Below, piece by piece: positions 5,624-60,254 of a DNA stretch of 64,000 nt. Location: contig JBLDXI010000016.1 in the NCBI GenBank assembly GCA_047495785.1, positions 868,001 to 932,000 of the forward strand, read 5' to 3'. Each line of letters starts with the position of its first letter. The first letter of the stretch is position 1. Position numbers and translations under genes: made by a program. Below the pieces are notes generated by a model that saw only the letters and a program-made list of their open reading frames with translations, was not told where the DNA came from and did not search any database. The stretch is from Lepidodermella squamata (lineage: Eukaryota > Animalia > Gastrotricha).

Positions 5624-6889
5624 TTAAAAATCTACAATGTCAAAATTGAATTTTACACTTGAAAGAACTGCATTCTTGGGAGACGGCGTACTCTCAGATA
5701 ACGCTGAGCGAAGAAATTCAAATTCAATCGAAAACATGCTGCTCCACCGGGACAGGAACCGCAAGGCGTATATCTATCATACTAGGAATCTCGAGACTCG
5801 AGTTAGCAAGATAAAACAGCTAGACAGAGTTAGGTAGCAAGGTTATCTCTTATCAAGATAAGCTCATATAAGCGGATTCATTCGGAAATAATGGTTTCCG
5901 GGTTTCGGGTTCCGAGTTCACCTTGTCTTGAACCTTGAACCTCCGCCATGGACGATGGACATGCGGGGAAAATTTGATCACTAACCAATAATAAACATTC
6001 AACTCTGTTATCAAAGACCCAAGACCTATTGCTAGGAATGCACGACAGCTAGAGAAGAACAGAAAGCTGTTTGGGGCTCCCGAAATGAAAGTTTGACTTG
6101 TTCGTCAAAGAGGTAATACCCGCCACATGAACTAAAACTGGGTAAAGTATCGACCGAAAGGCAACTCTTACCTTTGCAGCTCAGCCCTTTATCCTGTCCT
6201 CGGGAACCCATAAAAGCACTTAATAAAGTCAAAACCATTATAGTAAATAAATTAAATGCCTAATTTATTTCTAAAATCCAGATTTAAACACGTTTTATAT
6301 TGACTAAATTGATTTAATTTCAAGGACTGGTTGCATGTGTTCGGGGAACTTGCGAGCTGTTTTTGAAGTTCTGCTCAGTGGAGCTTCCTTAGAGTCCGGT
6401 TACACTGCTAAGAACTTGTTGCTCTTAATGATTTGTAATCAGGAGAAGTCATAATGGATTGAAAACAGACATAAACAACAGCTTAAACAAAGCTCGCAAG
6501 TCACTGCAGATCATTTGAACAGAGCGTAAGGCCACGCTAGGCACCATCTCCGTTACCTTTTTTAGTGCAAGTGGTTGGTTTTTGTGCGAGTGAAGGTGCC
6601 ATTATGGACTAATTACTTCTTGATACTTAGTATTATTATATTATAATACCATTTTGATTTGCAAATCTTCATTACACGAATTCGCAGATATTTTCACTTG
6701 AGGTTTATTTCCTTGAAGAAGTTTGGAAATGGTCTGGATCCGTTAATCCTAAGGCTCCCGATGAAAACGTTTGTTTGAGGTGCACGGTTGAACTAATTCC
6801 GCTGGTGAAAAGGGTTATTTGGTCGTATTCGTGAATCCGCATTGCTTCATAAATTGGCCAACTCGATGATGCTTACCTAACGGAACCTA

Positions 6890-8340
6890 GCAGCGGGTTT
6901 TCATCAGCACCAACTTCCACTTATCCGAGAAGTCTCATCATTTGTTATGGATTGTTATAGACCAATACTAGTTGATAGAAACAAAAATTACATTTGCATC
7001 ACCTTCCGTTGGCGTGCTGCCAAATTTTGCTGCTAAGTTCAGCTTTTACTATGTAAAATGGGTGCATCGATTTTGGACCCCATTTGTTATATCTGACAGC
7101 AGCACATAACAAACGTGAGAATTTGTTATATAACGTAACAAATGACGCTGATTGCGATGGTGATTTTTATTTTACCATCAGCATCACCTGGACAGGTGTG
7201 GATCGAAAAAACCAGGTATGGTGGCTTACTACTAGCAGGTAGGGTGCGTCCCATGACCGATTGTTTTGTTTCCATAACCGTCGTAGCCGAATTTCCGAAT
7301 TTCCGAAATTGATGAGCAAGAAAAGTAAGAAACTCGAGGGCATACATCTTTGAAATAGAAATTAATTTTCGTATCAGAATAAACCATAGCACTTGCTGGT
7401 CTTAAGTATTCCAAAATTTAAGAGTATCAATAAACAAATTAAACAATGATTTCTCAAAGAAGGTAACGAATATTATTGACTTTCTCGCACGAAAAGGTCA
7501 TATTAACAGAATAAAATATTATAGGTAATTATAAAATCAACATCACCAACGTTTTCAGGGCTACTTTTTATCTTCTAGAATTAAAATTCCACATTTGTTA
7601 CGTTAGCGCTGTCAGTTAAAAAAATATCGTAATCTAATTCAATTCAGACCCATTTTAAATTTGAATAGCCAGCTACGAATCACGTGGTCAATTAACCGCC
7701 AAGCCGTCAATTATATTCGTTAGACAATAGAGATGTTAATTTCTGCATCATTTTTTACCCTAGTGCACTCATTTAAATGTGAAGTTAATGTAACATAATC
7801 CAAGCTTCCGCTGCCAAGCAAGTAATTTTCATTGCAAACTGCCATAATCGACATTGAAATTGCAACTTTAGTTAAACTCGCTTTTATTTCTCGAGTTATA
7901 TGAATCGAAAGTTCGCAATACTTTGTGAAACATGGTAATTTACCACGGAGAATCCGAAAAAATTTATCTCGAGGTCATGGGACGCACCCTACCTGCTCAG
8001 GTAAGCCACCATACCTGGTTTTTTCGATCCACACCTGTCCAGGTGATGCTGATGGTAAAATAAAAATCACCATCGCAATCAGCGTCATTTGTTACGTTAT
8101 ATAACAAATTCTCACGTTTGTTATGTGCTGCTGTCAGATATAACAAATGGGGTCCAAAATCGATGCACCCATTTTACATAGTAAAAGCTGAACTTAGCAG
8201 CAAAATTTGGCAGCACGCCAACGGAAGGTGATGCAAATGTAATTTTTGTTTCTATCAACTAGTATTGGTCTATAACAATCCATAACAAATGATGAGACTT
8301 CTCGGATAAGTGGAAGTTGGTGCTGATGAAAACACGCTGC
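6890..8340. repeat. Long inverted repeat (~370-bp arms 6890-7258 and 7973-8340, ~715-bp spacer); foldback or non-autonomous DNA element
   Basis: Arms are near-perfect reverse complements (e.g. tcatcagcaccaacttccacttatccgag / ctcggataagtggaagttggtgctgatga); no clear TSD or transposase ORF. Confidence 0.85.
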
Positions 8341-10210
8341 CAAGTTCAAAGCGGTTGATGCTTAGCCAAAGACTTCATGAATGGTGTTAACTTGGCAATT
8401 GGAAACTCGTGTTGGATACGTCATACGTATGGCTGACCGGAAAAGCCAGAAAATGGTTGGGATAGCTCTGATCGGTATCCTATAGTATCCGTTGCGTCCC
8501 ATTTTTAGCGCGGCTACGCACTAATGAATATGAAGTTGGACAATTGGCTTTTAAAAAATATTATCCATCTCGGATAAGAACCATTTTCTGCATTACTTTT
8601 TGTGAAAATGGCAGGATATAGGTAATTTATGGAAAATTGCAACAAGCCAGCAATGCAATACAAAAAGAAAACCAGGACATGAGACAACCATTGAAACTTT
8701 ACTTTTCAAAACTTGCAAACAAACTCACAAACACTTAACTCATGTTTTATACATAATTTATAATCCATATTTTTATATTAGGTGTAGCATTATATTATTA
8801 TTGACTTTGGATGCCGCTTATAGACAAAATAAATGCACACAGCGCATACTATTTGATAGATGTTACATCATTTCTCGCGTACATCGGCATTTCACGAGGA
8901 AAACCAGGCGCACTCGAATCTTAAAAGCGCGAATTACAGGTGTCTTCACACTGAGCCCACCGTAAACCACAGGTGCATATTCGCTATCATAGAAAAACTA
9001 GCTTGAATATCGTACAACGCCGTTTAGTGGAGAGAGAGATAGACAGCATAGCTTTGAAATTACGAAGAAGAAGAAATAGCCGTTAATTTGTTAGCTTATA
9101 CTTCAATTAGAAAACAGATCAAATTGAATTTTTTCTTTGCATGGAATATAGCAAGATGTTCATTTTATCAGACGATATTCATACATTATCATGGTCCACA
9201 AAGCACACGCCGCATGCTGCATTTCATCATGTACTTTGGGTGCTCTAACAACAGGCAATGGTCATGTTAACAGAGAGTAAAAATTCGGAATTGTTTTTCC
9301 CCTAGAAACTATAAGCTGAAGAAATCAAACAACATTCATCAATTTTTTCGACATATCGGCCCACCGCGAAATCAGCCGCATTTCGAAATTTCTTCATAGA
9401 ATGGGTTTCACGTCGAAAAGGCACCCATCACAAGTGTTCGACAAACAAAATGAACTAGCGCTAATTATCGAGGATTGGAAAAAATCGACAGGCATCACAA
9501 AAGCACAGGTCAGCCTGGTTTCAATTATAATGATGATAACATAAGAATCAATAGTCGCAACAATTCTCGCACCAGGTGAGAAGCAAGAAATAGAGCTAGA
9601 TATGGACGAAATTTTGAGTCAACTGAAAAAATACGCCGGTGGTGAGTCGCAGGGTTGAATTTTTGGTTATGACTCGACTACGGTGTCATTTTTAAAACAG
9701 GTTAAAGCGAAATGACTAAATCATGCGGCAAGAAGGAGACGATAGGTACGCTGGGATATATCTATTCAATAAAAGCAATCTTCTTTTTTTATTACGAAGG
9801 AATATAATGGAAAATTGTTTGTGCTGTGTTTGAAATACGTTGATATAAAAAATAATCTATCATTATTTCATTCAATATATATCATGATCGAGGAGGATAA
9901 TCGCGCGCTCGGGAAAAACATATTCATTTTTAATAAATAAATATAATAGAATAAATAGACGAATTTATTTGAGTGAAGTCACAAACTAATCTATTCTTAT
10001 GTTTCACACGCATGTTATGACGTCGCAAAACAGATCATCGTGCCGTCCATCGTTTGACACATTCATTCATTTTTGTATACAACAGCGTTGCAACGACGGA
10101 AAAAATAATAAATAAATAAATGAATAAGAACTTGACACATAGAGAGAGAGAAGAGAATAAGAGAGAGAGAGAAATTGACGTTAAGAAATGATGATTGTCC
10201 TTTGAAATAA

Positions 10211-12207
<1,997 letters not shown>

Positions 12208-12642
12208 CTAGAAAAACACAAAATTAACATTAAATCCCGAAATTTACAAAATTTAAGATTATAATTATTTTAAAATAAATGGATAGTGCTGAATTTCACC
12301 ATAATTCTTCTAGTTAAGGCTTCAAGAGAGAAAATTCCAGCTTCCAGGACTATATCGTGAGCATTTTTAGATCTCTTTGCTTCAATTTTGAAATCGGCTC
12401 AAAGATTAAAAGAAGCAATCGAACGTAAATTTTGACAGGCAACAAAACTAATATTTCAATTAAGTCATTTTCTCAATTCGACAGCCCAAGTTTAGAAACA
12501 GATAATTTTTGTAATTTCACGCTCAAATTTGTTCAATTCCTTTCTATATTAATAAAAATTATAAATTCCTTATTTTATCAAGGATTCCTCACAAAATCGG
12601 CAATATCACTTGTATAATAACAAGCCGCACGAACCCCTCAAT

Positions 12643-14300
12643 CATAGACAATGATGTAACAGATCGGACACTCACGCACTTGCCTGTTGTCGTTAAACCA
12701 TAAATTTTCACACTAATTTAAATGCATTGATTTAAAAGGTGGAAAAAGATGTACATCTCCAATTTTTTTTAAATTTTCATAGAAAGAATCTCCGTCTTTC
12801 AAGGATTCCAAAGATCAAAGGCTCATCGCGCGATTCGATGCCGTTGATTTTTAAATTGAAAAACAAAAATGTGCATTGAAATTTAGTTGTTGAGTCCTTT
12901 CAATTCATTTTTTTCGCGTGGCCACATGTTTCTTTCCTCTTAAAACACAAACACAGATGGCGCCATTTTGTACTTTTTTATTATTACACATTTTCGAGCA
13001 TGAAAAGCGAGAAAGCGAGTCAAAAATTTAATTAAATTAAATATTTCCAGGGTGGCTACATGTTCTGATTTTGAGCTGCTTTCCGTATTTTCATCGGCTG
13101 TTTCGTATCGAATTGGCGCATTCGAATTGGTGCTAGGAGTGTACCAGATTTTCTCGAATGATTGATCGCCGAGTTTTAATTATCGAAACGATAGGTCACC
13201 AATGATGGGCGAGTCAGACTAAAATGAAAAGAAATTACCAGCATTTTCTCCAAACCTTATTTTTCTTACCATATCGTGCCATCGTGGGTTCGAAAGCTGA
13301 AGCATTCAACTACGCGACATGGTGTTACAAGACTCGAGTCGCAGCGAATAGATAGAGCCCGAGCATTTCTTCCCCGATAAGGGGCAGCGAAGCTTCATTT
13401 TGCATGCCTTTCTGAAGCAATTAATTCTTGGAATTCAACTTCATCTCTGCTTTGCAAACTTTAAAAAGAAAATGAACATCATCAAACAAAATTCAATGTA
13501 AAAAGGCAGTTGTTTACAGGGTGCACGAAAAATTTCGATATAATTTTCTAATGAATTTCGTAATAATTTCTGAATTAGATCTCCGAGTTTTTTTTAATAA
13601 AAATCCTTATAAATTTATTTTAAAATGGCTCCGGAATTTATATTAATTTGAAATAATTCAAAATATTTTCGACCATAAAATAAATATTCGTATCTAAAAA
13701 TTATGAAAATTATGCACGGTAAAAAATGCTACAGTCATTATTAGGCTGGAAATATTAGGCGAACTTCTCAGGTTTTAAAGCTTTGAAAATGTCGAAAACT
13801 TACAGCCAAAAATATGAAATGTCACTGGTTTTTAAATGAAGGAGGATTCAAACTGTATAGTTGTCAGGTGGGATTTCTAAAGAAAGATTTCAAACAGAAA
13901 CCGATGATAATTTAAAAAATGTCCCCTGAGCTCTCGTGGCTCGTGCTAAAGGGTTGAATTTCAAGTGTGTTGTTGATTCCCATTTGCATTAAAATTTCTC
14001 ACCACAACTTGTTTTTTCTTCGAGTGAATAATGAGTCATGATTACGCAACACAGTTTTGCATGGTGCTAATAATCGATTTTTCGATATTGATTTTCTCGA
14101 CAACGAAGCCGAATCGCGCGACGGGGTTCGGTTTATTATGGCCGTAAAAAAATGCCCGATTTTCTGATATTTTTTTCAAGAATTTATGAGATGTACATAT
14201 TTTCGGCCGGATTTATAATGGCCGATCCACGGTACAAAGTTCATAATTAAATTTCAATGCGAAGTGTGTGAGTGTCCGATCTGTAACATTATTGTCTATG
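12643..14300. mobile_element. Non-autonomous P-superfamily-like DNA transposon, 1658 bp, with 39-bp imperfect TIRs
   Basis: Left end CATAGACAATGATGTAACAGATCGGACACTCACGCACTT (12643-12681); reverse complement of 14262-14300 is CATAGACAATAATGTTACAGATCGGACACTCACACACTT (3 mismatches); 8-bp TSD for this family seen at 18532/18571; no transposase ORF. Confidence 0.8.
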
Positions 14301-14433
14301 CTTTATGTATTTGCGCGCAATAGTGCTCTCAAGCCGATACCTGAAAGTCGTTTTGACATTATGCAGAATACATGAAATTAAAAGAGTGTGAGAAATTATA
14401 TCGGAGCTCCTCGTGGATGCCAATCGGAAAGAA

Positions 14434-14919
14434 TTACGATCTAAATAGTGAAAAGCAGTGAAGTGTCGATGTTTCCGAACAACTTGTGCGGTTAATCATG
14501 CCGCAAAAAAACTTCGGTACCGTTATCCATGGAACGGAGGCATACTCCGTAGCAAAAGAATTAAATAGAAAAACAATGACAGTTCCCAACACGATGCAGC
14601 CGAGTAGTATGGATAAAAATGTCATTATCAGCCCCCATGGAGTGTTAGAGGGTGTATTAGGATTGTTGGATAAGAGACATAGTCACCGCTCGTAACTGAT
14701 CAACATGAAGATCCAAATATAGATTGAGAACCCAGAGTTGTCATTACCCAGGCCAGCCCTGTGCATAACCAGGCTGGAGTGTCCCAGTAACCAGAACCAG
14801 CAGTTCTTCCGCCCAAATAGTGGACCCATCCAACAAAGAATGGTCTTGATTCGTTATAGCCTCGGTAGAACCCAGGCTTCGTTCATGTAAGCTCGGTTTG
14901 CAAATCTGGAGCTGTCCAT
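14434..14919 (-). pseudogene. Inverted copy of the class A GPCR pseudogene
   Basis: Mirror image of 17921-18406. Confidence 0.8.
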
Positions 14920-15583
14920 AGCTTGAGAATACAGGTATGATTTCGCCTCTCAATGCGAAGAGGATTTAGCTGATTTTTACTCGGTTGTGTTACTCACCGC
15001 GCGCGCCTTCCGCTTATTTGCTCATGCGTTGTGCGTTATGCGAATGCTCTTATTTTTCATTGAGTGGAATTCGGACGGATGCAAAACAGTCTACTTCTCA
15101 AGAGAGCATTTGCGCACGCCCAACAAAACTTAAATTGTCGAAAACATAATCAATATTCAACATTTTTCAAGTCTCAGTTTGCTTCATGGACTAATGCAGT
15201 TTTCTACCTACGCTCATCTGAAGACCGAAGACTGCTAATCGTGGATCGCTGCGCGCTGTAGACTCTAGATCCTAGATCGCCCGTAGCAACATGTTGATCT
15301 TGTATCATAGATTATGAACAGTTGCGGATTTCGAAGAGCAAGATTTCAGGCTGACCAGGAACGGTCTCCTAGACTTGCCCTCCTATGACACTGCACTGTG
15401 TACATTTATTTTATTCGAAACGTGCTTTAAAAAATAAGGAAAATGTTGTGTCATGTATTTGAAGAGCAATAAAAAGGGCCAGTTTCAGCAAGTTTACTTG
15501 TAGTTAGCTTTCGGTCCACCTGCGCCGGCTTCATAACGGCTGAAGATTCCGGTGAGTGCCATGGGTTTGGGTTGGGTCGCGAA

Positions 15584-17256
15584 CATAGACAATAATGTTA
15601 CAGATCGGACACTCACACACTTCGCATTGAAATTTAATTATGAACTTTGTACCGTGGATCGGCCATTATAAATCCGGCCGAAAATATGTACATCTCATAA
15701 ATTCTTGAAAAAAATATCAGAAAATCGGGCATTTTTTTACGGCCATAATAAACCGAACCCCGTCGCGCGATTCGGCTTCGTTGTCGAGAAAATCAATATC
15801 GAAAAATCGATTATTAGCACCATGCAAAACTGTGTTGCGTAATCATGACTCATTATTCACTCGAAGAAAAAACAAGTTGTGGTGAGAAATTTTAATGCAA
15901 ATGGGAATCAACAACACACTTGAAATTCAACCCTTCAGCACGAGCCACGAGAGCTCAGGGGACATTTTTTAAATTATCATCGGTTTCTGTTTGAAATCTT
16001 TCTTTAGAAATCCCACTGTTCTGATTTTGAGCTGCTTTCCGTATTTTCATCGGCTGTTTCGTATCGAATTGGCGCATTCGAATTGGTGCTAGGAGTGTAC
16101 CAGATTTTCTCGAATGATTGATCGCCGAGTTTTAATTATCGAAACGATAGGTCACCAATGATGGGCGAGTCAGACTAAAATGAAAAGAAATTACCAGCAT
16201 TTTCTCCAAACCTTATTTTTCTTACCATATCGTGCCATCGTGGGTTCGAAAGCTGAAGCATTCAACTACGCGACATGGTGTTACAAGACTCGAGTCGCAG
16301 CGAATAGATAGAGCCCGAGCATTTCTTCCCCGATAAGGGGCAGCGAAGCTTCATTTTGCATGCCTTTCTGAAGCAATTAATTCTTGGAATTCAACTTCAT
16401 CTCTGCTTTGCAAACTTTAAAAAGAAAATGAACATCATCAAACAAAATTCAATGTAAAAAGGCAGTTGTTTACAGGGTGCACGAAAAATTTCGATATAAT
16501 TTTCTAATGAATTTCGTAATAATTTCTGAATTAGATCTCCGAGTTTTTTTTAATAAAAATCCTTATAAATTTATTTTAAAATGGCTCCGGAATTTATATT
16601 AATTTGAAATAATTCAAAATATTTTCGACCATAAAATAAATATTCGTATCTAAAAATTATGAAAATTATGCACGGTAAAAAATGCTACAGTCATTATTAG
16701 GCTGGAAATATTAGGCGAACTTCTCAGGTTTTAAAGCTTTGAAAATGTCGAAAACTTACAGCCAAAAATATGAAATGTCACTGGTTTTTAAATGAAGGAG
16801 GATTCAAACTGTATAGTTGTCAGGTGGGATTTCTAAAGAAAGATTTCAAACAGAAACCGATGATAATTTAAAAAATGTCCCCTGAGCTCTCGTGGCTCGT
16901 GCTAAAGGGTTGAATTTCAAGTGTGTTGTTGATTCCCATTTGCATTAAAATTTCTCACCACAACTTGTTTTTTCTTCGAGTGAATAATGAGTCATGATTA
17001 CGCAACACAGTTTTGCATGGTGCTAATAATCGATTTTTCGATATTGATTTTCTCGACAACGAAGCCGAATCGCGCGACGGGGTTCGGTTTATTATGGCCG
17101 TAAAAAAATGCCCGATTTTCTGATATTTTTTTCAAGAATTTATGAGATGTACATATTTTCGGCCGGATTTATAATGGCCGATCCACGGTACAAAGTTCAT
17201 AATTAAATTTCAATGCGAAGTGTGTGAGTGTCCGATCTGTAACATTATTGTCTATG
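15584..17256. mobile_element. Rearranged derivative of the P-like element carrying two right ends
   Basis: Starts CATAGACAATAATGTTACA (right-type TIR), 433 bp of inverted right end joined to internal sequence from 13061, ends in right TIR ...TTATTGTCTATG. Confidence 0.75.
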
Positions 17257-17920
17257 TTCGCGACCCAACCCAAACCCATGGCACTCACCGGAATCTTCAG
17301 CCGTTATGAAGCCGGCGCAGGTGGACCGAAAGCTAACTACAAGTAAACTTGCTGAAACTGGCCCTTTTTATTGCTCTTCAAATACATGACACAACATTTT
17401 CCTTATTTTTTAAAGCACGTTTCGAATAAAATAAATGTACACAGTGCAGTGTCATAGGAGGGCAAGTCTAGGAGACCGTTCCTGGTCAGCCTGAAATCTT
17501 GCTCTTCGAAATCCGCAACTGTTCATAATCTATGATACAAGATCAACATGTTGCTACGGGCGATCTAGGATCTAGAGTCTACAGCGCGCAGCGATCCACG
17601 ATTAGCAGTCTTCGGTCTTCAGATGAGCGTAGGTAGAAAACTGCATTAGTCCATGAAGCAAACTGAGACTTGAAAAATGTTGAATATTGATTATGTTTTC
17701 GACAATTTAAGTTTTGTTGGGCGTGCGCAAATGCTCTCTTGAGAAGTAGACTGTTTTGCATCCGTCCGAATTCCACTCAATGAAAAATAAGAGCATTCGC
17801 ATAACGCACAACGCATGAGCAAATAAGCGGAAGGCGCGCGCGGTGAGTAACACAACCGAGTAAAAATCAGCTAAATCCTCTTCGCATTGAGAGGCGAAAT
17901 CATACCTGTATTCTCAAGCT

Positions 17921-18406
17921 ATGGACAGCTCCAGATTTGCAAACCGAGCTTACATGAACGAAGCCTGGGTTCTACCGAGGCTATAACGAATCAAGACCAT
18001 TCTTTGTTGGATGGGTCCACTATTTGGGCGGAAGAACTGCTGGTTCTGGTTACTGGGACACTCCAGCCTGGTTATGCACAGGGCTGGCCTGGGTAATGAC
18101 AACTCTGGGTTCTCAATCTATATTTGGATCTTCATGTTGATCAGTTACGAGCGGTGACTATGTCTCTTATCCAACAATCCTAATACACCCTCTAACACTC
18201 CATGGGGGCTGATAATGACATTTTTATCCATACTACTCGGCTGCATCGTGTTGGGAACTGTCATTGTTTTTCTATTTAATTCTTTTGCTACGGAGTATGC
18301 CTCCGTTCCATGGATAACGGTACCGAAGTTTTTTTGCGGCATGATTAACCGCACAAGTTGTTCGGAAACATCGACACTTCACTGCTTTTCACTATTTAGA
18401 TCGTAA
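17921..18406 (+). pseudogene. Internally deleted, frameshifted paralogue of the GPCR at 20536
   Basis: atggacagctcc...gcttacatgaacgaagcctgggttct...gaatcaagaccattctttgttggatgg and tggatcttcatgttgatcagttacgagcg align to 20536-21200 with deletions and stops. Confidence 0.85.
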
Positions 18407-18531
18407 TTCTTTCCGATTGGCATCCACGAGGAGCTCCGATATAATTTCTCACACTCTTTTAATTTCATGTATTCTGCATAATGTCAAAACGACTTTCAGG
18501 TATCGGCTTGAGAGCACTATTGCGCGCAAAT

Positions 18532-18578
18532 ACATAAAGCATAGACAATAATGTTACATCATTGTCTATGACATAAAG
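18532..18578. mobile_element. Transposon excision footprint: 8-bp TSD ACATAAAG + 31-bp fused TIR ends + ACATAAAG
   Basis: ACATAAAG|CATAGACAATAATGTTACATCATTGTCTATG|ACATAAAG; first half is the right-type TIR, second half the left-type TIR. Confidence 0.9.
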
Positions 18579-18917
18579 TTAATTTTATTTTAACGGGATG
18601 CTCGGATCCACAGTCATTTACAGCAAATGCTATTTTTACCCGATCGCAGTAGTTTGCCGCGTGACAACATTTACTTTTTCCGTGTAATTGGAATTTTCGT
18701 GTATTAAACCTCTGATTTGGCTAATTATAGAAAAATAGCCCGATTTAATGACGTATTCTATTACACGAGCGCCTTGTAAATAAGCTTGAATCTGCAAATA
18801 AACCCGAATGCAAATAAAATCAGTGGATATTTAACTTCTACGAAATACATTATTTTGAGATTAAACTTGAAATAACTTTGCGCTAAGACTGATGTGAATT
18901 ATTCGCAAAGTTCTTCA

Positions 18918-20057
18918 ATGAAGCTTTACTACAGCCTCATTTGTGCGCTCTTCAACGCGGAATGTGCGCTTGCTCGAAACCCAAACTGGAACATTTCAAG
19001 ACTTCACTCTCTCATACAAACGCGCCGAGATAATGCCCACGTGACAGGACGCGACCCGCCAAAATTGAATGAACGGGATGTGATATCCCTAAACTTTACA
19101 TTTCGAGCGCTGGTTTTCATTTCTTTGGATGAGATAGGCGAAACACTCACAATTCTGCCAGATTTCCAACTCAAATGGCAGGATCCGTTCTCGAAATGGG
19201 ACGACATCAAAGACTTTGAAGCTATCACTGAGCTAGCTATGAACCCACGAAGCAACTGGGTGCCTAAGCTTCTACATATGAACAACGCCGAAGACATTTA
19301 TACAACGGTGAAATACGAACAAGACCTTGATTCGATCCACTTGTGGCGTGATGGGGTTGTCCTATTCTACCCACCTGTGCCAGCAATTACAACAGTTTGC
19401 CCGCTTGACTTTCTCCGCTTCCCTTTCGATGAGCAGACTTGCAATTTCAAATTCGGCTTCATGGAGTCATGTGCTGACGTTGAACTCGGCAATATAGCTA
19501 TTCTGGTTGGTATTCCATGGAAGAAAATCGAGTTCTCATCGGAAAGCTCACAGTGGTACGTGATTGATAGTCGAGCGATTCTGAATAGGAAGTGCGGCGC
19601 GTTTAACGAGGCAGCCCAATTCAGCATCACCCTCAAACGCCGCCCGTTACAGTTCATTTACAAAGCAGTAATTCCCATGGCTTTTCTGATGCTGCTCCAG
19701 TTAGCAACCTTCGGAATTCCGGCTAGTGCCTCGGACCGGTCCGCTTATGCAATGACTTGCCAACTAGCGTTGGGGGTTCTTCAAACAAACATAGATAGCA
19801 AATTGCCAACAACTTCGCAGCTGAGCTACATTTGCATAATTTTCACTATTCAACTCGGCATTGCGACTGTCATCACAGTTTATGCCTCAATTTCCTGCTA
19901 TGTCTACAACAACTTGATAAAGAAGTGTCACAAGCAGGACCGTAAGCTGTTTCTGATTAGAGCCGTCAACATCAGCGATGCGGCGTGCTTTTCTTTCTGT
20001 GCTCTAGTCATTATAGCTTCGTCCGCTATATACATCGCGAAAATGCAAACTGATTGA
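18918..20057 (+). CDS. Intronless Cys-loop ligand-gated ion channel subunit (divergent nAChR/5-HT3-like)
   Basis: Signal peptide, WQDP, WVPKL, Cys-loop CPLDFLRFPFDEQTC, LKRRP followed by four TM segments. Confidence 0.9.
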   Translation: MKLYYSLICALFNAECALARNPNWNISRLHSLIQTRRDNAHVTGRDPPKLNERDVISLNFTFRALVFISLDEIGETLTILPDFQLKWQDPFSKWDDIKDFEAITELAMNPRSNWVPKLLHMNNAEDIYTTVKYEQDLDSIHLWRDGVVLFYPPVPAITTVCPLDFLRFPFDEQTCNFKFGFMESCADVELGNIAILVGIPWKKIEFSSESSQWYVIDSRAILNRKCGAFNEAAQFSITLKRRPLQFIYKAVIPMAFLMLLQLATFGIPASASDRSAYAMTCQLALGVLQTNIDSKLPTTSQLSYICIIFTIQLGIATVITVYASISCYVYNNLIKKCHKQDRKLFLIRAVNISDAACFSFCALVIIASSAIYIAKMQTD

Positions 20058-20535
20058 ACTTGTCTGAAAAGATTAACCTGGCTGTTCAAATGCACGCCGA
20101 CGGGAAATATTCGTGCCGAATAATAAACACCCTGAGTTCATTATCCATGACATTTTTCATGAGTCATCCGAAAGAGATTTCAAGCTGCTTAAATGCAGGT
20201 GTCAAGAAACGTCTTTCAGATATTTAGATTATCGCGAAAAACTGCAGCGGGATGAACAAATTGTATGAGATACGATCTTCTCTTGTTGTTGCTTTTTATT
20301 CAGTTTGAATTTCCAGAGCGGAAGCTTTTTGCAATCAGTCAGCATTCAACAAGGAAATTCCACCTGCGATCGAACCTGTCCTAATGGAAACATCGTGCGA
20401 ATATCAAATTGTTGAACGGACGATGGTGTTTAGTTGCGAACGGTGTTGAGAGAATATCGTATTATCCTGCATAAAATTGTCCACATATTTGGGTATGCGC
20501 ACTGAGAGGTAGAATCCTAAACTGTTTTTCAAGCG

Positions 20536-21735
20536 ATGAGCAGCCTTAGCTTTGAGAAGCGTGCTTACATAAATGAAGCATGGGTTCTTGCTTCGAGCTC
20601 CAGACGGGGCTATAATGAATCGAGACCATTCTTCGTCGGATGGTTCCACGATTTAGGCGGACGGACTATAGAGGAACGCGCTATGTTCCCGATAATCTAC
20701 CTCGTCGTGACCATCCTCGTGATTGCGACGAGCTTTGTGAACGTGGTTACTTACTACAAGCGCAAAGTCCGCCGTGATTTCTTTGTTCTAACCGCGATTC
20801 TTGCTGCTGTGTCGATATTTCACGCTGTTGGGATATGTATAGCCCTGTGGATACCTGTTCGAAGTGGTTATTGGGAAGCCCCAAGTTGGTTATGTCCCGG
20901 AATTTCTCTGGTCATGTCAACTCTGGGCTGTCAATCAACTTGGATCTTCATGCTTATCAGCTACGAGCGCCGCATATGTCTCTTATCCAACAATTCTCAT
21001 ACAACGGCAAATACTAGAAAGGTTACGGTGATGGCATTTCTATCTATCCTGTTAGGCTTCATCGTGTTTGGCACTGTCACGTTTTATCCATTCGATAGTG
21101 CTACGGCAGAGTATGCTGCAGTCCCGTGGATAGCTAACGGTACCGAAGTTTTGTTTTGCGGCGTATTTACCCACAAGCTTATCGGAAACATCGACACATC
21201 ACTACTGCTTGTCATTTACTTTGCAATGCTTTCTGTAGTCATTCCTAATAACGTAATTGCATTTAATTATTGGTGAGTATTCAAATAACTGGAGCCATGT
21301 AAATCAATTATATTTCTTTACAGGCAAATATTCCGCAAGTTTCGGGCTTTCAAGAATGATTTGATCTCAAAGAACAGAACTGGGACGGTATCACCAAGCT
21401 TGAGTTCAATTGTTCGTCCTCAAGCCCTTTTGGCTAACTGGCAGCGGCTTGAAATGTTCTACATGTACCAGTCGTTGGTGTCCTTTGGGGCTTTCTCACT
21501 TTTCCACATTCCGCTAACGTTTAGTTTGATCTGCCTACTACTCTGGAACGGCGCTGGGCCAGATTACCTATCATCAACAGCTCATCAGATGTGTTTTCTG
21601 GCTTACTCGATCGAGATGGCTATTGCGCCTGTTATCCAGTGTTTGAAACCTAGCTTTATCGATGATCTAAAACGTCTTTTCAAGATGCTTCGCTGCCGCA
21701 AGACAACCGTTTTCCCGTTCTTACACCGTACATGA
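20536..21735 (+). CDS. Class A GPCR, FFAR4/GPR120-like orphan; exons 20536-21272, 21324-21735
   Basis: Seven hydrophobic segments, TM3 Cys and ISYERR (DRY variant), TM5 IP...FNYW, TM6 FHIP. Confidence 0.8.
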
Positions 21736-22012
21736 CTTTCCATCTCTCATCATTGAATTTGCATGACTCTATCTTGTTTGGATTTTGTTTGAAAATAGGA
21801 TTTTTTGCCTCGATTTGTTGACTTTTCCGCTAGTTTCGAGCCCATACTTTTGTTAGTCCCTATCAATCGCATATATCTATCGAGGTACCTCCCTGCAAAA
21901 CTCTATCGACTTCTTAGTTTTCGAGTATGCCTAATCATTCTATACTGCTTGAAGGAACGTGTCACCCCTTATCTTGGGATAGTCCCGAATGACGGTACTT
22001 AAGGACGGAATG

Positions 22013-22197
22013 GGTCAAATAAAATAAGCGTGGCCCAATGGCATTGTAGCCTCAATCGCCTTGGTCCATTCCTCGCCGTCGAAACGATGGTCAGTGTAGG
22101 AAGTCTTGCTTAGGACAAATAACAATAAGTAACGAATGAATTCAGCTCGACCACGGCCGTTGAAATAATGTAAAGTGTAGGACAGCTTTATCAGCAC
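22013..22197 (-). pseudogene. Truncated duplicate of the sigma GST at 48625-49327
   Basis: [13 protein letters not shown]...TMPLG nearly identical to the intact gene, ATG lost, coding sequence fused directly to the GST 3' flank (ggtcaaataaaataagcgtg); 22240-22510 matches GST upstream 49540-49815. Confidence 0.9.
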
Positions 22198-23389
22198 TTA
22201 TTTCTTGAATAGATCTGGTGATCAATTTACTTTGAGAAGGTTTTTTTATATTGAATATTTCGATGCGGAAATAAAATAATAACTATAAGATGACCGCCAC
22301 GTGGTGATTGCGACGCAGATCGAGTCACGTTCATGGCCGCCTGCTTTGGTGGTGACTCACCATAAGCACTCGACCATCTTAGCTCCTCCAAGCCAAGTTT
22401 GTTGGTACATAACTCAAAAATTCACAAAATTACAGAATTACAATAATTCATAATACTATTTACACCAGTCTTTTTATAGCCACACGACAGGGCTATATTG
22501 TCATTTAAGACGATCATATCGCGACTTGCGCGCCAGAACAGTGTGTCGGAAATAGAAAACGAATGGCGTAATCCATTCGATAATCCATTCAGAGGCGACT
22601 GAAAGCGTCGTATGACGATTTGTGATGATGAGCCGAGAAAGATTCGAAATAATAACGGTCAACCTTCAAAATAAGGCGGTCTCAAATATAAGACGGGTAT
22701 TTAGACTTGGTTTGAAAAAGGACAGCCCCAACAATTCGGGCAGAACTGAAATTTCTAACAATTGCGAAGTTTTACTTTTTCCGGTTTTGAGTTCTTTGTC
22801 TGTTGGGCGAAGTAAATATTTTCGGCATCATTTCATTTTAATTGGAGAATAGTGTGTTACTGACTGATTAAATCTTTCCAGATCATGTGCGCTCCAGATC
22901 AATAAATTAATGTTAGTACTGAGGAGCGGCCATGTTTATGTTAAATCTAGTATTGGCATTTTTTACTAGCCACGCATCTCGTCGACTCTACATACAGTAG
23001 CCTTTACGAATTACCCATGGAATAACCGATAAGATCCATAACGTGCGAGTACTTGTTGATAGTGATAATCCTAATCATTTCAAGATTTTACCATTGGAGC
23101 AGCGCATTACAGCGATTATAATTTCACACCCGGCGATCGATTTTTCATGCTATAACTGACCAACTGCCTGCTAAAAAATCGTTGCTCAGTGCAGCAATAA
23201 TATTCCATCGATTTCAAGTGTTTTGTTTTCATACAATCTATTGCTCTGTAATCCTGCTCCAAGCGATGAGCTCACTACATTACACACATTACTACACGAT
23301 CTGCAAACAATGTAAAATACGATTATTTTACACCATGCTTTATAAAGGGAAATAGCTTTCGATTTTTCCGCAAAAGCTAAAATGAAAAA

Positions 23390-24611
23390 ATGATTCACAA
23401 TACCTCGAACTACATCGGAAAGTCATGGGTTTACGGCTACTTCCCCGAACGTGGCTTCAACGAAACGAGGCCTTACTTCATCGGCTGGTACCACGATCTA
23501 GGGGCGAAAACGGTCCAGGAAAGGCTTTATTACAACCTGGCCTACGCTTTCATGACAATGTTTGTAATAGCCGGAAATCTTACGAATTTCGTGGTTTACT
23601 ACGAACGAGATGTGCGGCGTGATTTCTTGATGCTGACAGCTATCCTCGGTTTCAGTTCAGCCTTGTTTTGCATAATTCAAACTCTCGCACTCGCGGCTAC
23701 AACGCCAAGTGGCTATTGGGAAAATGGAAAATTGTCATGCCAGATTGTCATGCTGCTCAACGCTGCAATGGGATGCCAGACTACCTGGATCTTCGTAATT
23801 ATTAGCTACGAACGGCGGCATTGTTTGACATATACTGTTCCTAATCCTCCGACTCAAACTGCCCGGGTAAGATCGGTGATTCAGAATACTAACTTGTGAT
23901 CTTGCTTTTTCCATCTTTAGGTGCTGATTTTAGTTGTTGTCTCTTTCTTATTTGGGTTCTCATTTTTCACTTTGGTCACTTTTTATCCACTCGATGCGCT
24001 AACTGTTGAGGTTGTCCAACTCTCTGACGGCAGAATGGCAACAGTTTGCGGCTTTTTCGACCACAAAATCTATGATGAATATGGAACATCCACCTTAATA
24101 GTTTGCTACTTTGCAATCTGTGCGGTGTTACTACCGACCGCTGTCATTGCTTACAATTACTCGTAATTTATTTGGTTATTAAGAGAAATGTTTCTACGCT
24201 CTTTATTATAGGATGATTTTCCGCCACATTCGTCGGGTCAAAATGCAGCTGAACAGAGCAACGGTGAAGTGGCAAAAACGGGAGATTTTCTACATGAATC
24301 AAACTATTGTATCGCTCATTGCCTACAGCCTGTTTCATGTGCCCCTGCTGATCACGATGGCTCTCGTAATGTTTTACAACACCTTGGGACCGCAAATTGT
24401 CTCGCCTGGGATGTTAAAGAATTCAGTTCTGATATTTATGCTAGAGAACGCTATTGTTCCTCTAATTCAGAGTTTGAGTTCTGACAGTTGGCAAAGGTTA
24501 AAGAGCTTGTGTTATAAGAGAGATAGAAAGCGGAATAGTTCGAATTCACAGAGCAAAGATGAAGCGTCGACAAGTTTCAATGTGAAGGTCAACCTGAATG
24601 ATGACCAGTGA
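23390..24611 (+). CDS. Class A GPCR paralogue of 20536; exons ~23390-23866, 23921-24162, 24212-24611
   Basis: ISYERR, shared N-terminal RG(F/Y)NE(T/S)RP(Y/F)F(I/V)GW(Y/F)HDLG motif, seven TM segments, GT-AG introns. Confidence 0.8.
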
Positions 24612-50581: not shown

Positions 50582-53071
50582 CTAATTGGGAGCATCAGTT
50601 CCAACGGCGATGCTGACGCTACTACTAAGACTGACATCCTTAACCAGACCAATCTTAGACAAACCCATCATTATCGTGCGCCGTTGGAAAAGCACGATCA
50701 GCCCGAAATTACTCGCAAGCGCGTAAGTTGTCATTATCGCGATTAGCCCAACCGGGGACATTTCAAAAACAGCCAACGCAAATGCGCACAGCAGAGCAAT
50801 CGACGCGAGGAAATACAGCGTCAGGGCAATGTTTTTCACCTCCTGATGGCTCAACTCCTCGATAAGAGCTTCGCCGAAATTAACGTGATGAGCATTTGAT
50901 TCACGCTGATTAGCCGCAATGGATAGCCTCGCGACAGAATTGCGTGTGTTATTGGAACTTTTCCGATTCACATTTCGCGAGACGGCGGCGGAATTAGGCG
51001 GACGTCCTCGCTTTTTGAAGGATCCGATAGCTGCGATGACAGACGCAAATAGCAGCAAGCCCTGAAGAGAAACTAGAACGATTGCAGATTTCGGATGGGC
51101 ATCTCCACTGTCGAAGGAACAAATGTACGAATATTCATTGAGTATCGTATCGGAAATTTCGTTGTACGAACTTTTCGTGACAACAATAGATTTCGGCATA
51201 AATTCTGCGAGGTACCATCCTTCAAGTAGACAGGAGTCGACAAACATAAGACTCGAAAAGATTGAATAATGAAGCTTTTCATTCCGATCCTCAGGTCGGT
51301 GCCTGAACCCCCAGAGTTTGAGGAATAAAGCTCCGATCATCGCAGAAAATCCCATAAGAAACAACGGCGGAACACCAATGCAAAAAGTTGAAAGTTTCTC
51401 CTGATCCGAGCTGTCTAAGGGGAATAGAAAAACTGATACCGAAATAGCTGTCGCCCCAAGGGTTGCCAAAAGGTTGAACCAATTGAACGTAGGCGAGGAA
51501 TGCCATGTCAAAAACCCAACCACCCAGTTGAAAAAGACAAAAACTGCCGTAGCGATAATCATGCCCAATACGATGTCTGGTCCTACATGTCTCCTGATGT
51601 CAACTTCCAATGGCTCGGTTAGAGGGGGCCTGCCATCAGGGGTGGCCCATTGCAACGGATTGAGTCGCGTGAAAAATTTGTTGATGTCACTGTTGTAGCG
51701 ATCAAGCTCCCTTGAAACTAGAACAGGCTTTCGAGAGCCCTTCGCAACTTGGAGTGCAACGATTGGAGGGTTTAGACCTTCATCTGTACCGTTGACAAAC
51801 GCATCTCGGCCAAAAACTCCGGAAGTATCAAGTTGTTTCGTGTTCCTCCGAATCAACTCTGTAAGTTCTTCTTTCCGACTCGGATCAGCAATCAGGTCTT
51901 TCAAAGTTTCATTTTGTCGATTCAGCTCTAACTCGGCGTTGTGGAGGATTCGAGCGCCCAGAATGACGTCTTGGAAACAAAAGATTCTCCAAGCATAGGC
52001 ACCCATTCGGCTCGCGAAGTCTGGAACTCGTTTCATCATCAAATCATTGAATTGGCGTAGCGTGAATCCGATCGTGTTCAATGAGTCCATTGGTACGGAA
52101 GTTGCTTGGAAATCAGGCCCGATGTACAGCGAACTTTCCGCAAATTCTTGCAACATCTTACGAGTGCAATTCGGTGGTAGGACCGCCGTATTAGCGACAT
52201 CGATCCAGGAGTTGAACATCCATATGATATGAGGCCCATACAACCCCTGACGGTGAGCTTCGCAAGCCATAGCCGGGCAGAGGTTGACGTAGCAATTGGC
52301 GTAGATGACCCTTACATCGGCAGCTTTCAGCCGGCGCAGCGATTCTGCCGGGTTATCGAAATAGAACTCCTCCGCCGCGATCTTCTTCCCAGCGGCTAGT
52401 TCTGCCTTAGCGAAGTAGATGAAGTCGTCATACGTTGTTTGCACGGCATCAGCGAGGTAACCGATACGGTTCCATCCGACTAGATTCATGATTTTCGCGC
52501 GGAATTTCTCAACCTCGAGGAAGGACGGGGCGAAACGGTAGAAATTTGCGAATCTTTTTCGATTGGTGAACTGAGGTTCCGTGCACCCAACTACAACATT
52601 TATGAACCCATAACTCTGCGGCATTCTTGAGGCAGTTGTGCATGTCGGTGAACAGATACCTCCCAGATAAATCGGAGGGACATACGCTTCACTCGCGAAG
52701 GTTTCGTTCACCGGCAACGATGCAACTCCGAACGTCTTCGAGCTCGGGACGACAGGTTTCAGGTTTTCGTACATGTTTATCGTGGTTTTCAGAGCAGCAA
52801 CTGCTAGGCACTGGTCGTCGGCCATATCAATTTGAATTTTGTAATTCGGAAGGATATCAGGGTTTGCGTTGATAGCGTCCAGAGCGATTGTTGAAGCTTC
52901 CGTGCACATGTTGCCCATCGGGTTAACCGGCCCACCTAGCGGAGCATTCATCGGAATCTTAAGGGTGTATTGCTTATCGGCTATTGTTCCTTTCAAGATC
53001 CCGAGCATCATCACCAGCAACACTTTTCGGCTTAACCAACCCTGGAAAATCTTTGTTTTCAAGCTGCTCAT
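50582..53071 (-). CDS. GABA-B-like class C GPCR, copy 1, intronless
   Basis: Venus flytrap (ALDAINANPDILPNYKI...DDQC, GICSPTC, CEAHRQGLYGP.IIW), W..DG.PP linker without cysteine-rich domain, seven TMs. Confidence 0.9.
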   Translation of the reverse strand: MSSLKTKIFQGWLSRKVLLVMMLGILKGTIADKQYTLKIPMNAPLGGPVNPMGNMCTEASTIALDAINANPDILPNYKIQIDMADDQCLAVAALKTTINMYENLKPVVPSSKTFGVASLPVNETFASEAYVPPIYLGGICSPTCTTASRMPQSYGFINVVVGCTEPQFTNRKRFANFYRFAPSFLEVEKFRAKIMNLVGWNRIGYLADAVQTTYDDFIYFAKAELAAGKKIAAEEFYFDNPAESLRRLKAADVRVIYANCYVNLCPAMACEAHRQGLYGPHIIWMFNSWIDVANTAVLPPNCTRKMLQEFAESSLYIGPDFQATSVPMDSLNTIGFTLRQFNDLMMKRVPDFASRMGAYAWRIFCFQDVILGARILHNAELELNRQNETLKDLIADPSRKEELTELIRRNTKQLDTSGVFGRDAFVNGTDEGLNPPIVALQVAKGSRKPVLVSRELDRYNSDINKFFTRLNPLQWATPDGRPPLTEPLEVDIRRHVGPDIVLGMIIATAVFVFFNWVVGFLTWHSSPTFNWFNLLATLGATAISVSVFLFPLDSSDQEKLSTFCIGVPPLFLMGFSAMIGALFLKLWGFRHRPEDRNEKLHYSIFSSLMFVDSCLLEGWYLAEFMPKSIVVTKSSYNEISDTILNEYSYICSFDSGDAHPKSAIVLVSLQGLLLFASVIAAIGSFKKRGRPPNSAAVSRNVNRKSSNNTRNSVARLSIAANQRESNAHHVNFGEALIEELSHQEVKNIALTLYFLASIALLCAFALAVFEMSPVGLIAIMTTYALASNFGLIVLFQRRTIMMGLSKIGLVKDVSLSSSVSIAVGTDAPN

Positions 53072-53658
53072 GGCTTTAAATTGATAAAATTATAAAGTTA
53101 TGGTCTGGGATTTCAGCAATGTTTCAGTAAATTTAGAAGCCAGCACTCCGATAATGAAAAGCCATAGGAAAATTCGCTGAAAATGTAGCTTTCAATTTTT
53201 GCAAAGTGATATATTTTGGGCTAATTGATCTGAGGAAAAATACCTTGCAGGGTTGTCCCAGACAGCATTAAAAAGTGATTACAGCGAAGCACGGCTGCTG
53301 AATGTAATACGATACTGGCATCGCCTTTCGGATAGAGCATTGACGACAATTCATCAAGTAAATGCGCACTAGGTAAATCAAGTGATTCACAGTACATTTC
53401 TGCTATCAGCCTTTAGTCAACTTTCTAATGGGCTCGAGAGTCCCCTATCGAACGTAAACATTTTACGAATTGACAAAACGGTAATTAAAGAACTTAGGTG
53501 AAAATTTCTTGGACACACTGTATTAACAGATAAAACGGTTCACGGAAAGAAACAGTATTTAGCCTTCGCTCTCGATCATTTCACCGTTTCCGAAAATCTT
53601 GCATCTAATTTCTAGCCGTTGTTGCCTCTACATACAAAACATCGGTTCTGGCCCGGTG

Positions 53659-55974: not shown

Positions 55975-56450
55975 TTTTCGTAGCTATGTCAAGCCATAAT
56001 CATTCCCCATGATGGCTTTAATACTCCGGCTATCAATTATTTCAGTTTCATCGTTCCCGGCATGTGTCGTAGGTGGTTCAAGCATCAGACAGTCGCACGA
56101 CGCATTTGTACTGATATAATTGGCCGAAACTACGTAGACGGTTAGGCTTCCCGTGGGAGTGTGTACTCGATTAACATGCCTTCCTAATTGTAATGGCTCG
56201 AGTTGCATGACTCGGCGGCATACTAGTAACTCATCATTAGGCCTAATGCAATCAGAAATGCGAGAGGCAAGAAGCAGGTAATCAAGGGATTCTCTCCGGT
56301 GTTGAAGGCAGAAACGAGATCTGGGGCCACTGAAAATGCGAAGTCCTAGGGTGTTTTCAGGAGCTGATATCGCTGATATCACTAAAGATACTTTCATTTC
56401 TACGAGAGCGACAGTTTTCTTAGAGAAGGCATAATTACGAAGGCGATCGG

Positions 56451-56685
56451 TGTGGCGAAGCCACCTGTTGAATGTTGAATTTGAAATTGGCGGTCGACCT
56501 TGACCGAACTACTTGGAAGTTTATTGTACCGCCAAATGGCGAATGATGATTGGTCGAATCGTTGTATTTAAACCTTCTGTAAATATTATATTGGGGTTGA
56601 AAAGATTGGAGAAATAAACTAGAGATCGTGATTAACGTGTTTTATTGTTGCCAGTAGAACTACTAGCCTTGGTCTTCTCGCCACA
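56451..56685. mobile_element. Solo LTR, 235 bp, 5-bp TSD ATCGG
   Basis: ATCGG|TGTGGCGA...TCGCCACA|ATCGG; TG...CA inverted termini, internal TATTTAAA and AATAAA. Confidence 0.85.
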
Positions 56686-56950
56686 ATCGGCGATAATCCG
56701 CCTCATATCATGCTGCACTATGCCGTCGGTTGGGAAACTGCTGTGAACTGACGTAGTATGATTCGCATTGTTGCGTGACTCAACTAACATAATTATGCCT
56801 AATTCAACAAGAAAAAAATGGTCCGAATTCGAGTCCTAAATTCAAAGGGGCATCCTCTGATTTCGGACCATATTGTTTCCTGTAACAAAGCAAAAAATTG
56901 AAATTCATTGAATTTATTGGGAACACTGGCAAGAGGCAAGATTCACTATA

Positions 56951-59257: not shown

Positions 59258-60057
59258 TTGATCTGTGTTACCATAATATGTACTGGGACGAAGACTACTC
59301 GAAAAAACATCTTGAAAACAGTCTATATTATCGAGGCGATAAATTATCTATCGTGGAACGTGACGATTTGTTTATATGATTTGAGCACGTAGGTGATGTC
59401 TGAGATAGGATGGGTGAGTGGGATGGAAGTTTTAATTATTGAAGTACCCTTTTATCGTCAGTAGACAAATGAAAAGTGCCAATGTCAGACGTTTACTGAA
59501 TTTTGTTTTCCCCCTGCTATTTTCGATACGTAAATTATCTACTATTACAGAATTTAATCAATTTAAGAAATTCGATATTATCATGAAAAACAAAGTTAGT
59601 TCGTCTTGCGATTTCAAGTCGCAATTTCGCAATGCTAACCGTGATCGGAGTCATATTCGGCGGCCAAGCGTTCCTTGAAGCACCAGTTTTCGTCATTCCA
59701 TCGCGAAATTGATCTGGCCCAGCTGACATGACGCCATGAAGGACAAAGAATTTCGGGTCATTCGCGACTGTGGATATAATGACCTAAATAAAAAAAAATT
59801 AGGTTGAAAGACGAATCCAAGTTGAAATAAACCCTTGGCCAGAATTCTTGGCCAGATTTTTGACAATTTAAGGCTTGTCAATTATGGTGATTTTCGATCA
59901 TCGGCTACAATCTCAAAGTTGGGTCATACTGGGTAGAGCACATGGACAAAATTGATTCCCTGTTTTCTTGAACCTGTTTTCTTGATGTCTGAAATGGTTT
60001 CGTTATTATTTCATCTTTTTTGAATCTAACCGCACACTGTCGCCCACCCCGCGATAT

Positions 60058-60254
60058 CATATCGTTAGCGCCGTTGAGTAACTCGGATTTAGGCTTGTTT
60101 ACACCTGTTTCAAGGTCACGCGTGACAAGTAAAAAGGCGCCTTTTTAACGTGAATAAAAAGGCAACAACAGAACATTTTTTACTTGTCACCTATCAACTT
60201 GAAATACATATAAACAGGCCTGCATCCGAGTTATTCAACGGCGCTAACGATATG
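60058..60254. mobile_element. Palindromic MITE (~197 bp)
   Basis: catatcgttagcgccgttgagtaactcggat...atccgagttattcaacggcgctaacgatatg, with pairing continuing towards the centre. Confidence 0.75.

Follow-up and report, generated by a model that had tools for sequence, protein, structure and literature searches.

The locus described here raises the question of how a 1658-bp DNA transposon, two further pieces of it, and two mirror-image copies of one host segment came to lie side by side, with all joins but one falling on a transposon tip. The window is the whole analyzed stretch of 64,000 nt from Lepidodermella squamata (contig JBLDXI010000016.1, hereafter C16, positions 868,001-932,000), and window positions are used unless a contig is named. 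According to a repeat search and direct reading, positions 12643-18570 have the order A-B-C-D-C'-B-C-D'-footprint, with the following features:

12635-12642: p, a copy of target site CCCTCAAT, adjoining the left tip on its left; the second copy is C32:645676-645683, right of a right tip
12643-13060: A, first part of the complete element
13061-13867: B, middle part of the complete element
13868-14300: C, last part of the complete element
12643-14300, plus strand: complete element A+B+C, 1658 bp, assigned as non-autonomous to the P superfamily, with its left tip at p and its right tip at a reverse-complemented ACATAAAG site
14301-15583, minus strand: D, inverted copy of a 1283-bp host segment, 0 mismatches to D'
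14301-14308 and 15576-15583: the ends of D, t' (CTTTATGT) and q' (GTCGCGAA), respectively
15584-16016, minus strand: C', 433 bp of the right end, reverse complement of C, with its tip adjoining q' and a private base at 15936
16016-16017: junction J4, element position 13868 (inverted) joined blunt to position 13061
16017-16823, plus strand: second B
16824-17256, plus strand: second C
16017-17256, plus strand: second B+C, covering the right-hand 1240 bp of the element, with the right tip adjoining q (TTCGCGAC)
17257-18539, plus strand: D', the host segment as originally oriented, beginning with q (17257-17264) and ending with t (18532-18539)
18540-18570: footprint of 31 nt, flanked by two copies of ACATAAAG
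18571-18578: second copy of target site t (ACATAAAG)

All copies of B, C, and D are identical, the sole exception being the one base in C' (equivalent to 13948 A>G). In the window, 6 occurrences of the TIR-tip pattern were counted versus 0 expected by chance, and the flanks at the tips read CCCTCAAT-left tip, right tip-CTTTATGT, GTCGCGAA-right tip, and right tip-TTCGCGAC. The only junction away from a transposon tip is 16016/16017, where the sequence, read directly, contains no microhomology. These results agree with a preliminary description of the locus in every coordinate of the repeat structure, in the flanks (including the end at 14300, which on re-reading still lies on the reverse complement of the target-site duplication of the footprint), in placing all boundaries of D on TIR tips with 16016/16017 alone being internal, and in the duplication of 1.28 kb of host DNA. 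That description also proposed a middle element with two right ends and mirror-image flanks; these tips and flanks are indeed seen, but the structure is probably better read as two joined aborted re-replication arms, as set out below.

As for the contents of D, a short ORF lies there together with a truncated pseudogene of the 7TM family. The earlier label of GPCR pseudogene is plausible but weakly supported: the 7tm_1 matches of intact neighbouring paralogues are sub-threshold (E-values 1.4e-4 and 0.011), and the copy in D carries stops and is without ~80 residues.

The element encodes nothing and has 39-bp imperfect TIRs; perfect 8-bp target-site duplications surround 6 of the 6 other copies checked. 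An autonomous copy (G000:C15:3663775-3668042) has 39-bp tips identical to those of the window element, and in a profile search its 467-aa ORF matches PF21787, PF21788, and PF21789 (TNP-like RNaseH_N/GBD/RNaseH_C) above cut-offs. The ORFs scanned contained no THAP domain. Judging by its sequence, the window element is thus a non-autonomous P-superfamily DNA transposon. The footprint carries a further mark of the family: 17 nt of the right tip and 17 nt of the left tip, overlapped over TTA, predict a 31-mer equal to the one observed, and the identical 31-mer with 8-bp duplications is present at three other loci (four in total). Staggered donor cleavage by 17 nt has been described for P-type transposases (PMC7776569), and the 17+17-3 nt footprint appears to be its signature, donor cleavage itself being read indirectly from the footprint.

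The preliminary description suggested looking for a reciprocal junction with a right tip next to CCCTCAAT, and such a junction exists at G000:C32:645675/645676. The left tip of the same element adjoins TTCGCGAC, so that C32 reads TTCGCGAC-element-CCCTCAAT, which mirrors the CCCTCAAT-…-TTCGCGAC order in the window. This C32 element is 100% identical to the complete element of the window. Target site p is shared by the window (12635-12642) and C32 (645676-645683), and q by C32:644010-644017 and window 17257-17264; each new 8-bp duplication is therefore split between one left and one right tip belonging to different element copies and contigs. With CCCTCAAT and TTCGCGAC at the tips on C32, the tip junctions can all be assigned in pairs to three target sites, each with an 8-bp duplication.

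Both sites can also be seen, or rebuilt, in their unfilled state. Contig C7 is a divergent collinear copy of C32:616568-644018 followed by the sequence from window position 17257 onward, unbroken, and has one unfilled TTCGCGAC (q) and one empty t-like site. This comparison shows that the left part of C32 and D' of the window were once contiguous around a single TTCGCGAC. As regards p, the site lies between two parts of a calcineurin A gene:

11761-12230, minus strand: calcineurin A downstream exons, with YRMYKK in the translation, matching residues 286-333 of PDB PPP3CA
C32:645871-646716: calcineurin A upstream 281-aa exon, covering residues 20-286

The intron rebuilt from the window and C32 is GT..AG, in frame, with a single CCCTCAAT, which shows that p was once a single site within the calcineurin A intron. 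Thus, of the earlier statement that the left end at 12643 abuts unrelated DNA, the abrupt junction holds, but the DNA beyond it is the other half of this intron. The split gene is the only close calcineurin A gene in the assembly, and the exchange must therefore be heterozygous or tolerated. A search of the assembly for an intact allele of p or q, an alternative haplotig, or a simple insertion at either site found none.

Taken together, the locus is on balance probably a record of three successive P-superfamily transposase events acting on the 1658-bp non-autonomous element. In the first, the element would have inserted in the ordinary way at ACATAAAG (site t), in reverse orientation. In the second, taking place in S phase, the transposase would cut the right tip on one sister together with the left tip on its partner and insert them at TTCGCGAC (site q), 1283 bp away and still unreplicated, while the donor flanks would anneal via their 17-nt overhangs to leave the 31-nt footprint. 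The fork would then copy the new right-tip/q junction into both arms and stop at 433 nt and 1240 nt, respectively, and the two aborted nascent arms would be end-joined, blunt, at 16016/16017. The expected product, QL-q-[ABC-D-C'/BC]-q-D'-footprint, is a composite insertion with a perfect q duplication around it, in which the D copies of the two sisters would lie in mirror orientation. In the third event, involving the complete left element, a left tip and a right tip, each from a different sister, would have inserted at CCCTCAAT (site p), in the calcineurin A intron of another chromosome region, giving C16 (the window) and C32 as reciprocal products. We infer the sequence of the three events, that the tips came from sister chromatids, and that re-replication took place and ended in end joining; for the exchange of the third step, ectopic recombination or a mis-join may also be the explanation.

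Replaying the three events in silico reproduces 9000 of 9000 bases of C32 and 13000 of 13001 of C16. With the p/q exchange undone, the locus has outer termini, inner duplications of element plus flank, one non-tip junction without homology, and an 8-bp duplication around the whole. The proposal of the preliminary description that hybrid-element transposition lies behind the inverted duplication is accordingly supported, as it needs the fewest events for the duplication, the footprint, and the exchanged flanks. A narrower version is put forward only tentatively, namely P-superfamily transposition-coupled re-replication and then a hybrid-end reciprocal translocation, heterozygous in the sequenced lineage, by which the sole calcineurin A gene is split.

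Several related schemes were rejected. A G2 hybrid-end insertion from a single element into q gives only dicentric or acentric iso-chromatids, and the S-phase version is preferred. Sister-chromatid hybrid insertion from a two-element chromatid straight into p predicts C'-B'-A'-q'-QL' after D, which is absent, and a composite insertion formed at p predicts p at both composite ends, which is not seen. As for the private base, the third full copy, on C24, could not have been the template of C', because it differs from the window element at 13838 and 13909, not at 13948.

Ordinary transposition combined with recombination offers a different explanation, in which normal insertions occurred at t, q, and p and ectopic recombination between identical copies produced the reciprocal translocation. 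The mirror duplication would then come from an inversion between two inverted copies, unequal end-joining, and a separate excision. In a variant, a q element and the t element on one chromatid supplied the right and the left tip, respectively, for an insertion into p, followed by break-induced repair with a U-turn, and Ac is indeed known to use directly oriented ends on a single chromatid. The element is active, with several identical copies, and exchanged target-site duplications also mark ectopic recombination, as argued for Galileo (PMC2775673). Moreover, since the breakpoint copies are 100% identical, a crossover between them would be invisible, and with all copies identical the hybrid-end insertion of the third step is indistinguishable from ectopic recombination. 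Such a history, however, requires 5-7 independent events versus 3, demands separate ad hoc steps for the 807-nt offset, for the footprint, and for the presence of an identical right-tip/q junction on each arm, and is at odds with an assembly that lacks any simple insertion at p or q. These routes, taken jointly, are considered unlikely.

An artefact of assembly or library preparation, consisting of a mis-join through the identical 1658-bp copies (a C16/C32 swap), a chimeric fold-back read at 16016/16017, or both, appears more doubtful still. Read clean-up was incomplete, as PacBio barcode was left at 65 places of the assembly, among them the points where C16 and C32 start; the exchange disrupts calcineurin A, an important gene; and the left part of C32 and the right part of C16 resemble halves of one ~0.85-Mb divergent block, with outer ends that are contig ends. 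On the other hand, both the 1.66-kb repeat and the 5.9-kb complex are well within HiFi read length, C' has its private base, and the remaining junctions fall exactly on transposon tips with a consistent 8-bp logic, which artefacts do not give. The arms also differ beyond D, site t being occupied on the left and excised on the right; as they are not mirror images there, one folded molecule cannot yield both. While untrimmed barcodes occur elsewhere at contig ends and internal sites, neither the fold-back centre nor the window contains one, and the centre is an 807-bp loop free of adapter rather than a zero-spacer palindrome. A missed-adapter mirror read was rejected on the same observations: no barcode in the window, the 807-nt central loop, and arms unlike at site t. 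The three transposase events stay the preferred reading.

To our knowledge, most of what is known of alternative transposition comes from engineered or selected alleles of Drosophila and maize, and so complete a case is rare in a natural genome. With natural rearrangements, too much time has usually passed for recombination to be told apart from the action of a transposase. At the present locus, all junctions are preserved at single-base resolution, as are both empty sites and the reciprocal product, and one locus would display a P-type route to a mirror-image host duplication, a two-right-ended derivative, a deterministic 17+17-3 footprint, and an arm exchange. If the proposed reading is true, this is a natural, base-resolved case of transposase-driven karyotype change. 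For genome annotators, it means that calcineurin A carries a gene-breaking rearrangement in the assembly. As far as we know, re-replication composite insertions have been demonstrated for Ac alone, a hAT element, and for no element of the P type, and the locus is suited to asking whether the hAT re-replication route also serves P-type transposases.

Among known systems, Galileo, also of the P superfamily, is found at natural inversion breakpoints of Drosophila buzzatii, where chimeric copies proved ectopic recombination (PMC2775673). Similarly to the present case, the element lies at both breakpoints, target-site duplications are exchanged, and unrearranged chromosomes show the empty sites. 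In contrast to the Galileo inversion, the locus here combines an arm exchange with a mirror duplication, and its copies are identical, which makes the chimera test uninformative. Hybrid element insertion of Drosophila P elements (Gray, Tanaka & Sved 1996; Preston, Sved & Engels 1996, both cited in PMC2775673 and PMC3744419) involves the same transposase superfamily, 8-bp duplications, left and right ends from different chromatids, flanking duplications, exchange of flanking arms, and a footprint where donor flanks rejoin, all of which have counterparts here. It differs in being known from genetic crosses, whereas the present case was found in the assembled natural genome of a distant animal, and its classical model is without the replication step that the first such event here needs.

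Maize Ac/Ds elements produce inverted duplications by sister-chromatid or reversed-ends transposition, with reciprocal translocations among the known outcomes (PMC3744419; PMC4270019), and composite insertions of Ac formed by re-replication have internal junction homology of 0-9 bp (eLife 2014, PMC4270019). Ac belongs to the hAT elements, its cleavage is of the hairpin type, and its footprints are small, in contrast to the P-type element with 17-nt staggered cuts here; the re-copied element segments here are also small (433 and 1240 nt), and the case is known from an assembly rather than with a twin sector. Nevertheless, as in maize, flanking DNA is duplicated in inverted orientation, termini flank duplicated segments of transposon plus flank, there is a single internal junction, and an 8-bp duplication surrounds the whole.

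The repeat complex of the window has the order A-B-C-D-C'-B-C-D'-footprint, C' and D' being reverse complements of segments C and D. Repeat analysis and sequence comparison bear out both this arrangement and the coordinates assigned to it in the preliminary description:

12643-13060: A, left part of the 1658-bp element
13061-13867: B, middle part of the 1658-bp element
13868-14300: C, right part of the 1658-bp element
14301-15583: D, segment between C and C'
15584-16016: C', inverted C
16017-17256: second copies of B and C
17257-18539: D'
18540-18570: footprint, 31 nt, flanked on both sides by ACATAAAG

The tip motif, which marks the element ends, occurs 6 times in the window vs 0 expected by chance. 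Copies of B, of C, and of D are completely identical, apart from one base private to C' (window 15936), a difference lost to rounding in the repeat tool. This base lies 80 nt away from the blunt junction 16016/16017, the only junction of the complex off a tip, and could be a repair or re-replication synthesis error, or a later mutation.

As for the neighbouring features, window 18894-24166 contains a single-exon Cys-loop receptor-like gene (Neur_chan_LBD, E 3.8e-22), followed by tandem divergent rhodopsin-like 7TM genes with sub-threshold 7tm_1 matches; a truncated member of this family lies in D'. An element with 347-bp terminal inverted repeats (99% identical) occupies 6883-8347 and has many 92-98% copies genome-wide, and 52000-63000 is a tandem array of ~3.4-kb units with 67-85% identity, also found on contig C7 at lower identity.

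Beyond the window (C16:868001-932000), the assembly (G000; 121 Mb, 151 contigs) contains 2 full-length copies of the 1658-bp element, one on C32 (identical) and one on C24 (2 differing bases), as well as ~80-89% related copies and short derivatives. Perfect 8-bp duplications are present in 6/6 other copies checked. A 4268-bp relative, apparently an autonomous P-type element, has the same 39-bp tips, an 8-bp duplication (CCTATAGC), and a multi-exon TNP-like transposase gene; its 467-aa ORF matches 3 TNP-like (P/THAP9 transposase) Pfam domains above cut-offs, and no THAP domain was detected among the ORFs scanned. The footprint consists of 17 nt of the right tip and 17 nt of the left tip, overlapping by complementary TTA ends, as expected after cleavage with a 17-nt stagger, a trait that sets P transposase apart (PMC7776569). 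The identical 31-mer lies between 8-bp duplications at 3 further loci, and repair after excision in this family thus looks deterministic:

G000:C15:3663775-3668042 (L037 775-5042): apparently autonomous P-type element
G000:C2:891516-891548: footprint copy, direct repeats ACCAGCAC
G000:C17:2595263-2595293: footprint copy, direct repeats ACTAATAA
G000:C9:4751698-4751730: footprint copy, direct repeats CGCGGAAT/C

TNP-like domains, 8-bp duplications, and the 17-nt stagger signature of the footprint together indicate a P-type, recently active family, of which the window's element is a non-autonomous passenger. MITE-like derivatives of ~252 bp with both tips, 81% similar to the right end, number at least 20 among the matches listed (e.g., G000:C54:1809712-1809963 and C31:133749-134000).

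All tip junctions sort into 3 target sites, t (ACATAAAG), q (TTCGCGAC), and p (CCCTCAAT), each with 1 left tip, 1 right tip, and an 8-bp duplication, and the tips paired at each site come from different element copies. In the window, p adjoins the left tip at 12643 and the right tip adjoins q at 17256/17257; the C32 copy, with q at its left tip and p at its right tip, is the exact reciprocal of these orphan flanks. The reciprocal junction proposed in the preliminary description, a right tip beside p, was thus located by genome search.

Two independent lines of evidence show that the four flanks once formed two intact loci. A divergent region of C7 (74-98% identity) is collinear with C32:616568-644018 and continues without interruption into sequence matching window 17257-41016, with one copy of q and one empty t-like site; collinearity continues 240 kb further left, and rightward to the right end of C16, the window's contig. 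On the minus strand of the window lie exons of calcineurin A that start at PPP3CA residue 286, and the exon for residues 20-286 lies on C32 immediately right of the element. Joining the window up to 12642 to C32 from 645684 restores a ~630-nt intron with GT..AG ends, in frame (Q-D-G-G-Y-R-M), with p ~190 nt inside it. Both p flanks are single-copy in the assembly, which contains no second close calcineurin A gene (next match 51% identical). Junctions and empty sites are observed directly.

C32-left (644 kb) and C16-right (205 kb), whose outer ends are contig ends, jointly match C7 at ~1.46-2.37 Mb. A ~0.85-0.9-Mb collinear block is present twice (C7:1.46-2.37 Mb vs C32:1-644 kb plus C16:885 kb-end; 74-98% identity), the p flanks being single-copy; it is a divergent haplotype that escaped collapse or, alternatively, a large segmental duplication. 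One possibility is that C32-left and C16-right belong to a single divergent haplotype block whose counterpart haplotype is C7, and that two near-identical haplotypes have been collapsed in the p region. On that reading the exchange would probably be heterozygous, and the genome may hold an intact calcineurin allele that is absent from the assembly.

The most economical history for C16 and C32 would comprise three events. After simple insertion of the element at t, a right tip from one sister and a left tip from the other would insert together into q, 1283 bp distant and still unreplicated. Annealing of the donor flanks would create the footprint, and re-copying by the fork would place the newly made right-tip/q junction in each arm, accounting for the identity of junctions 15583/15584 and 17256/17257. 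Synthesis would halt at different points, 433 nt along one arm and 1240 nt along its counterpart, and blunt joining of the two at 16016/16017 would give [ABC-D-C'|BC], a composite insertion bracketed by a perfect duplication of q. In this scheme we infer that the tips came from sister chromatids, when the jump took place, and how the fork behaved. Finally, the complete left element would enter p by classical hybrid element insertion, producing C16 and C32. When these steps were scripted and replayed, starting from the inferred empty loci, the resulting sequences equalled C32 at 9000/9000 bases, and C16 over 13001 bases except the one private base.

Ordinary insertions combined with ectopic recombination between identical copies appear unlikely: such exchange would yield the same exchanged duplications, but the mirror duplication would require 5-7 events by ordinary insertion. 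In Galileo, ectopic recombination was proved by chimeric copies (PMC2775673), whereas the copies here are identical and that test is blind.

An assembly or library artefact, which we regard as improbable, is favoured by an 18-mer (ACACATCTCGTGAGAGTA) left at the C16 and C32 starts and in 63 other places, which implies incomplete read clean-up. Its 65 untrimmed sites include many contig ends as well as internal positions (e.g., C16:1-18, C32:1-18, C15:531921, C15:536492), and it may mark adapter-containing chimeric reads. Over its first 16 nt it agrees with a PacBio-style barcode, taken here to be bc1003. The barcode, however, implies HiFi reads, which would span both the 1.66-kb repeat and the 5.9-kb complex. 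Moreover, the fold-back centre is an 807-nt loop without barcode, the arms are unlike at t, which is occupied in one arm but excised in the second, C' bears its private base, and every other junction follows transposon logic.

The hybrid-end transposition proposed in the preliminary description is thus supported, with the reciprocal C32 junction, the empty sites, and the replay added. The mechanism class is already known, from P hybrid element insertion and from Ac sister-chromatid and re-replication events; this case is notable for its completeness. The composite insertion matches both the inverted flanking duplications ascribed to sister-chromatid transposition (PMC3744419) and the structures left by transposition-mediated re-replication of maize Ac, in which internal junctions have 0-9 bp homology (PMC4270019). 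This suggests that P-type elements, too, can take the re-replication route.
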